A DNA stretch of 64,000 nt, from NCBI GenBank assembly GCA_943704425.1, contig CALSCP010001613.1, positions 77,856 through 141,855 on the forward strand, given 5' to 3'. The notes below the pieces were generated by a model. That model ran no database searches. It was not told where the DNA came from and worked only from the letters and a program-made list of their open reading frames with translations. Of this stretch, positions 46,817 to 48,250 are shown piece by piece. Position 1 is the first letter of the stretch. The number at the start of each line of letters is the position of its first letter. The translations under genes were made by a program, and so were the position numbers. The stretch comes from Ministeria vibrans ATCC 50519 (lineage: Eukaryota > Protista > Filasterea).

Positions 46817-48250
46817 ATGATGATGCTCCATATTACTTCGGCGCGGCGCAAGTTTTTCGACACAGAAAAGGTGTTTTGCTTTTTGTTTTTTTTATATATA
46901 TTATATATCTTCGTCTGTCTGACGGTTCTTGTCTCTTGAACGATTTAAATGACCTGAATGGTCCGCATCAACCTCATAATTATGATTAATTCTTAATGTC
47001 TTATGACCGAAATGTCGTAAATATGATTGTCATATACATTTCACTTTTGTGCCTTCTGTCGGCCGTCGCCAAGCAATATCGGCTTTATTGACGCTTGTTA
47101 GACGATGCCTGATGAAGATGGATGCTGTCGTTTCAACGGCATATGTGGTCATTTGATAAAATGTGTCTTTTTGGTGAACTTGACACTCTGTCTCTATTGA
47201 TAATCACAGATTTGTCATTCATTCACAAATCACAATTGCGATTACACTATTCTCTATCTCGTCGTGTTTTTTACTGGCTGCTTCCCACTATGAACATGTG
47301 CCGCGACCACAATGGCCGGAGAGGCTATTTCTCTTCGCTGCAGGTTAAGTTGTTTGATCCAATTGATCTTGTTCTCTGGCTTCACTAAGAATTACGATAC
47401 TGTCTCAGTCCTTTTGTATTATCATTCAACAATGGCTGACATGTGTCGAGAGCACAACGGCAGGAGAGGATATCTCTCAATGTCAGAGGTGCAAAGCAAA
47501 CAGTCTCACTGCAAATCAATCATTCACACCATCACATGATGGATATGTGCCGTACGCGCAACGGCAGGCTAGGCCACAGCGACTTATATGAGAATGTTAA
47601 GAAGCACATATTCAGTGCATATTCATCATCGAATTTTGATAATATTTTGAAGATTTCCAATATTTTGATATATTTTTGAGAAACTTGATATCATTCTTCT
47701 CTATACCACACCCTTTCTCTCGCCCTCACATTCGTCGTATGAACATGCTGCGCATGTGCTTGCAAATAAACGGTCGCCAGGGCTATATCGACGCCGATGC
47801 AAAGGTGTTTGTTGACACATTTCCCAATTGCCTTCTTGCGCCTCTCCGCAGCGCTGCAGGCCGTTTCAGACAGTTTCCTTTCGCCCCGAGGACTCATCAT
47901 CCCTCAATTGCCCTTGGCGTATTGTCCCCTTATTGTTCTCTTTGAAACTTGGAGTGACAAAAATCGAAAATTCAATCGAAATCATTTTTATTCCGTCTCT
48001 CTCTCTCTCTCTCTTTCCTACACTGCTTCTGCCTCTCTTCTGTTCGTATCATGGCTAGCATGTTTTGCTATACCAATGGCCGTCATGGCTTTAAGTCAAC
48101 TGAACAGGTGAAGCAGTTTGGGCCATCACACACACTGAATCATATGATACGTCGCAACACGTAACGATTGCGTGTCTCATTTCACTCATGTGGCATATGT
48201 GCTGCAGCCGCAGTGGTCGCTGTGGATACACACGTCGACCCGCCAGGTGA
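46817..48250 (+). other. Array of homologous short ORFs (micropeptides, uORFs or alternative first exons) with motif M-x(1,2)-M-C-x3-[NS]-G-R-x-G-[YFH]
   Basis: Clear copies start at ATG 47290, 47432, 47536, 47739, 48051 and 48188. Divergent copies start at 46817 and 47105. The motif is conserved at the amino-acid level despite synonymous codon changes. Confidence 0.7.

Follow-up and report, generated by a model that had tools for sequence, protein, structure and literature searches.

Eight short reading frames upstream of the ODC gene

A minus-strand gene (ATG at 46720) and a plus-strand orotidine-5'-phosphate decarboxylase gene (URA3/ODC; ATG at 48479) face away from each other in the Ministeria vibrans DNA studied here, a stretch of 64,000 nucleotides that we call the window. 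The original prediction had placed eight short open reading frames between the two start codons. We observed all eight on the plus strand and at the same coordinates (hereafter units U0, U1' and U1-U6). Six of them share a peptide motif and two are divergent, and the array occupies one strand within at most 1.43 kb upstream of the second ODC exon. The units are 18-23 codons long, and each has two or three in-frame ATGs and a GT donor of its own.

Three units are defined by spliced RNA. U0 (46817..46870), which is both the farthest upstream and the most divergent, has the first-exon coding part MMMLHITSARRKFFDTEK and ends at the donor AAG/GTGTTT (exon/intron) in phase 0, as spliced RNA and sequence agree. 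U4 (47739..47804; MNMLRMCLQINGRQGYIDADAK) and U5 (48051..48107; MASMF[C/R]YTNGRHGFKSTEQ) end, also in phase 0, at AAG/GTGTTT and CAG/GTGAAG. Pattern, frame and codon analysis assign U1 (47290..47343; MNMCRDHNGRRGYFSSLQ; donor CAG/GTTAAG) and U2 (47432..47488; MADMCREHNGRRGYLSMSE; donor GAG/GTGCAA), and pattern and frame assign U3 (47536..47595; MMDMCRTRNGRLGHSDLYEN; donor AAT/GTTAAG in the assembly); all three are in phase 0. The remaining two units are read from the DNA. U1' (47105..47173; MPDEDGCCRFNGICGH..) is degenerate, with Ile replacing the Arg of the motif, and has a possible donor TTG/GTGAAC in phase 0. U6 (48188..48246; MWHMCCSRSGRCGYTRRPA..) has its predicted donor CAG/GTGAAC in phase 2, is out of frame with exon 2 and has its own stop at 48248-48250; splicing would bring its frame to a TGA overlapping the ODC ATG.

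All units except U6, seven of eight, thus end at a GT donor in phase 0. The phase-0 units differ in length (18, 23, 18, 19, 20, 22 and 19 codons for U0, U1' and U1-U5), so every length change is a multiple of three. We found no AG acceptor directly upstream of the units. The common second exon (48461..48538, plus strand) follows an acceptor AG at 48459-48460, which is preceded by a polypyrimidine tract. After the acceptor, an 18-nt open linker (NASRSE) leads in frame into the ODC ATG at 48479. This ATG corresponds to the start of other ODCs in alignments, and the second exon aligns with their N-termini. These statements on frame are based on coordinates and phases together with the RNA joints described below.

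We compared the contigs of four public runs with 46400-50400: X1 and X2, from one 2025 study; X5, from a 2011 study; and X14, a DNA run. X1, X2 and X5 derive from RNA, since all three splice every intron of the ODC gene and its two neighbours, and the introns have GT..AG (or CT..AC) ends.

The constant ODC exons 3-6 (48600-48680, 48736-48819, 48888-48962 and 49013-49124, plus strand) match PF00215, and the GT..AG joints 48680/48736 and 48962/49013 are present in RNA contigs. The ODC exons are 43-80% identical to ODC proteins, including FEDRKFADIGNTV. The DxKxxD motif and the full ODC domain (PF00215) are present, with no OPRT fusion. Three features mark the ODC as a stand-alone enzyme: the mRNA starts with U0, the reading frame stops behind the ODC domain, and an OPRT-like exon is on a different contig (C642).

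Beyond exon 6 lies a CT-rich repeat (49125..49469), at which the assembly joins two unrelated loci and an ODC intron is broken. In all three runs, RNA contigs continue past 49124 with 30 letters that have a single match in the genome, on contig C408, where an N gap and a CT repeat immediately precede them. C408 carries ODC exons 7-10 (about 10100-10880), which encode ..RGALLLVEMSSAGSLAT.., ..HFTPGV..LGQQY.. and ..DVFIVGRGI..NAYVERTE, then a stop. We considered and rejected a truncated ODC pseudogene, since RNA contigs extend beyond 49124 and C408 carries the other exons in intact form. The break or chimeric join at 49125-49469 is thus in the assembly, and the ODC gene itself is intact. One practical lesson is that the apparent ODC truncation is an assembly break.

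We also noted several features of the neighbouring DNA. On the minus strand at 49470-50340 lies a gene for a hexapeptide-repeat protein with four CT..AC introns, whose RNA contigs at 49470 continue into sequence unlike the window. Close to its 5' end, the divergent gene upstream of the array is interrupted by a 74-nt CT..AC intron (46486-46561, minus strand). One unstranded X2 contig links the 5' exons of this gene to U0, so the two divergent transcripts overlap or adjoin in a bidirectional promoter region that they share. Farther away, a long minus-strand ORF (42787-45285) has a caspase-like region at its N-terminus and also encodes an NB-ARC P-loop (GMGGIGKTT), with a poly-Thr run and XX from N bases near its end.

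Splicing of single units onto the ODC gene

RNA contigs from all three runs join a unit to the second ODC exon. U0 is joined in X2 and X5 (46870>48461; depth 77 and 55, respectively), U4 in X1 and X2 (47804>48461; depth 110 and 16) and U5 in X1 (48107>48461; depth 120). All three joints have GT..AG introns and coincide exactly with the predicted donors and the predicted acceptor, and none of them occurs in the DNA run X14. In X5, a single 970-nt mRNA contig carries U0 together with the ODC body. None of the three RNA runs showed a unit-to-unit joint or a splice joint of U1, U2, U3, U1' or U6, although rare forms can be lost from contigs. On this evidence, U0, U4 and U5 are mutually exclusive first exons, predicted to be coding.

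Unit use differed between samples: X5 used U0 alone, X1 used U4 and U5 without coverage of U0, and X2 used U0 and some U4. The depth in X1 was at most 14-18 upstream of U4 and U5, compared to 110-120 at their junctions and ~500 across the gene body. A start far upstream is thus impossible for most U4 and U5 transcripts, which argues for starts inside the array. Contigs do not mark where transcription begins; from their depths we infer a putative promoter for each unit. Each of U1-U6 is preceded on the sense strand, at 10-75 nt, by an initiator-like word, TCATTY. This strand has eight copies, compared to 3.7 ± 1.9 in shuffles and two on the antisense strand, an enrichment that lends weak support to putative per-unit promoters.

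These data bear on the original prediction, which read the units either as free micropeptide cistrons or as regulatory uORFs of URA3. Its placement of the units in the URA3/ODC transcription unit was borne out, and the question it posed of a shared mRNA is answered for U0, U4 and U5, each of which is spliced in frame onto ODC exon 2. Neither proposed mechanism fits these three units. Splicing removes their stop codons along with the intron, which in these RNAs rules out both free-standing micropeptide cistrons and uORFs; the units are fused to ODC, and their abundant spliced forms have no stop of their own before it. The C-terminal ORF tails, described earlier as unrelated to one another, are intron sequence and not peptide. 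ORF-based reading of intron-rich protist DNA can thus mistake first exons for micropeptide genes, which is a second practical lesson. We conclude that the region is probably a tandem array of alternative coding first exons of the stand-alone ODC gene.

Conservation of the encoded peptide and signs of decay

We searched the 64-kb window with a degenerate DNA pattern for M-C-x3-[NS]-G-R-x-G-[YFH], allowing at most one mismatch. The six matches were all on the plus strand (47296-48229; U1-U6), compared to none in 100 dinucleotide-preserving shuffles of the window, so the motif is more frequent here than in shuffled sequence. Across the 29.7-Mb assembly, the strict pattern occurred at this locus alone, and a reversed-pattern control gave 0 matches. 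A looser pattern without the ATG, tried as a source of further motif loci, gave five other matches, equal to the five of its reversed control, and these were rejected. A profile of the eight units, compared with the genome's contigs, matched only this locus and contig C262. The motif family is confined to one locus in this genome.

The 266-nt contig C262 represents another allele of the region upstream of U0 (window 46600-46875), from which it differs by an indel containing a CA repeat and GTTTTGAATAC. The C262 version, and not that of the window, is found in the DNA run X14 and in the 2011 RNA contig.

The claim that selection acts on a peptide of ~14 residues rather than on the DNA held up on several counts. 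In the conserved columns of U1-U6, pairwise identity was 0.65, 0.83 and 0.43 at codon positions 1, 2 and 3, and in the variable columns identity was 25-33%. Comparison of dN and dS among the copies (Nei-Gojobori) showed dS to be saturated in most unit pairs; for U1 and U2, dN was 0.04, with five synonymous differences in eleven codons. The invariant Arg is encoded by both CGN and AGR codons. Neither the upstream nor the downstream flanks align between units, and a repeat finder recovered the coding cores only. A search of 46600-48600 against Rfam gave no match at E ≤ 1, so no known RNA family accounts for the conservation of the units.

The extent of the array and one of its readings needed revision. 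Of the six to eight units proposed as homologous, U1-U6 share the motif; U0 and U1' are too divergent to score against the U1-U6 profile. Ungapped alignment of U5 gives M-F-[C/R]-Y-T-N-G-R, with Phe at the conserved Cys position, and replaces the earlier reading of this unit. The core M-x4-N-G-R-x-G-Y/F/H may be a new short motif that belongs to no described family.

Searches for relatives covered protein collections and metagenomes. A phmmer search of protein collections with exon 6 gave six weak matches, none of them this organism's protein, and the U4 ORF as a query against protein collections gave no match. Two profile searches, length-filtered and built on a homologue scaffold with the exons as separate rows, returned at least 229 ODC/UMPS proteins; among the 229 matches listed, none came from this genome and none had [NS]G[RK]xG[YFH] near the N-terminus. 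In metagenomes, a search for two tandem motifs returned a single match (Ga0187218_1028416, 1-300). We rejected it as a chance match to an unrelated 31-33-nt tandem satellite (GGGCGATGTGCGTGRCATCGAGTGGTAGTGA).

Several units show signs of decay. Position 47597 is T in the assembly and C in X1, X2 and the DNA run X14, and the C changes the donor GT of U3 to GC. In U5, position 48066 is polymorphic (T/C), which gives a Cys or an Arg codon. The X1 RNA contig has C at this position, and X14 DNA contigs break exactly there, as at a heterozygous site. The GC donor of U3, the frame of U6, the missing Arg of U1' and the polymorphism of U5 are signs of decay. U0 has the best RNA support of any unit, yet it barely carries the motif.

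Decay of this kind is what one would look for if the array were a neutral remnant, left when a first exon was duplicated in tandem together with its promoter, with functionless peptides, so that the multiplicity of promoters alone mattered, or nothing did. The damaged appearance of U3, U6 and U1' and the Cys/Arg polymorphism agree with such an origin, as do the loss of most of the motif from the only unit used in X5 and the lack of a motif homologue on any other ODC among those retrieved. Copies as old as these, however, would be expected to have lost both frame and motif if they were neutral. Instead, M, N, G, R, G and an aromatic residue persist in six units whose synonymous sites are saturated and whose flanks cannot be aligned, the Arg codons are of both CGN and AGR types, and all indels are in frame. 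We therefore consider neutrality of the array unlikely.

Candidate functions and comparison with known systems

Only unspliced or read-through contigs of low depth (about 14-18, compared to about 500 for the gene body) carry several units on one RNA. In X1, such contigs span several units (47013-47804 and 48078-48488), and the second of these, 411 nt long and unspliced, is the only coverage of U6. An X2 contig is unspliced over 46863-47802 and then uses the U4 donor, which indicates that some RNAs read through the upstream units. These low-depth contigs are pre-mRNA or read-through forms, and upstream units could act as uORFs on them.

Such RNAs, with several unspliced units upstream of the ODC ATG in X1 and X2, would suit units that are regulatory peptide-coding leaders. 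As with the arginine attenuator peptide (AAP) of fungi, a pyrimidine-related metabolite would make the nascent peptide stall the ribosome or tune its progress. The peptide would do so as an N-terminal leader in frame with ODC or, on read-through or unspliced RNAs, as a true uORF. A short peptide under selection directly before the ancestral start codon is consistent with this, and so is U6, with its own stop and the overlap of TGA and ATG that its splicing would create. The abundant spliced forms argue the other way, since they fuse the unit in frame to ODC without a stop of its own, and phase 0 kept in seven units of different length suits fusion and not a uORF. We regard a leader function as improbable. 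A polycistronic locus that makes free micropeptides is most improbable of all: several homologous short ORFs do lie on one strand and low-depth contigs do span several of them, but the ORF tails and stops are in sequence removed by splicing, and one unit per spliced mRNA, fused to ODC, contradicts it for U0, U4 and U5.

Under the alternative-first-exon reading, each mRNA would use one unit, whose cap-proximal donor is joined to exon 2, and the units downstream of the used donor would be removed as intron. Each unit would have its own promoter, and U1-U3 may be used under conditions outside those sampled. The tags would be translated, and the enzyme would gain one of several paralogous N-terminal tags of 18-23 residues. 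The array would then be a promoter-choice device: the enzyme needs the tag, perhaps to dock, to be stable or to reach its place in the cell, and so every promoter has to supply a copy. If promoter choice is true, the locus would be a compact 1.4-kb system for studying cap-proximal donor choice.

We hold any specific function of the tag with much less confidence than the architecture. Tentatively, and with more doubt than conviction, the units may be interchangeable regulatory N-terminal tags (a degron, a docking site or a metabolite-sensing nascent peptide) that are chosen by promoter. If so, one housekeeping pyrimidine enzyme would be under several post-transcriptional or post-translational regimes, and a single-celled relative of animals would have a system like that of Pcdh or UGT1A with a motif of no described family. 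The unit starts are rich in Met, Cys and His, and two of the three expressed units (U0 and U5) have no Cys. We considered a Cys N-degron and Met-rich metal binding and give little weight to either: in-frame ATGs precede the Met-Cys, and U0 and U5 are expressed without Cys. The tag sits on URA3/ODC, which is easily assayed and genetically selectable for or against.

Full-text searches of the literature returned no description of a comparable array, whether in unicellular eukaryotes or on enzymes of core metabolism. The locus resembles three known systems in part. In insect tarsal-less/polished rice, free peptides of 11-32 residues are all translated from one mature RNA. Both loci line up a number of homologous, very short ORFs on a single strand; the units here, in contrast, exclude one another and are predicted to form the N-terminus of an enzyme. 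The fungal AAP, encoded by the arg-2/CPA1 uORF, is a separate single-copy uORF with its own stop codon. It shares with the units a short conserved peptide, under selection as a peptide, that is encoded directly upstream of a gene for nucleotide or amino-acid biosynthesis, whereas the units here number eight and are fused in frame to the enzyme by splicing. An 'NGR' is common to the units and the Neurospora crassa AAP; it lies outside the AAP functional core, and we take it to be a coincidence.

Variable-first-exon arrays are textbook devices of vertebrate cell-type diversity (protocadherins, UGT1A). The clustered protocadherins, UGT1A and GCNT2 are vertebrate genes with multiple variable first exons, which are paralogous and have a 5' splice site without a 3' splice site (PMC1885805, PMC3325998). 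One variable exon is included per mRNA, in frame, and encodes the N-terminal part of the protein (PMC1885805, PMC3325998). The ODC locus likewise has tandem paralogous first exons upstream of constant exons, with a common constant acceptor that is backed by RNA for U0, U4 and U5 and predicted from sequence for U1, U2, U3 and U1'. As in the vertebrate arrays, there appears to be one variable exon per mRNA, with no unit-to-unit joints in the three RNA runs, and in seven of the eight units the variable exon is predicted to be in frame with the constant region. The systems differ in scale and content. The variable part here is 18-23 residues, whereas that of Pcdh or UGT1A is a whole ectodomain or substrate-binding domain; the constant part here is a complete housekeeping enzyme that retains its ancestral ATG; and the whole array fits into 1.4 kb, in the small genome of a protist and not in a vertebrate, with per-exon promoters that are predicted. 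If promoter choice holds, a close unicellular relative of animals already uses the architecture of these vertebrate arrays.
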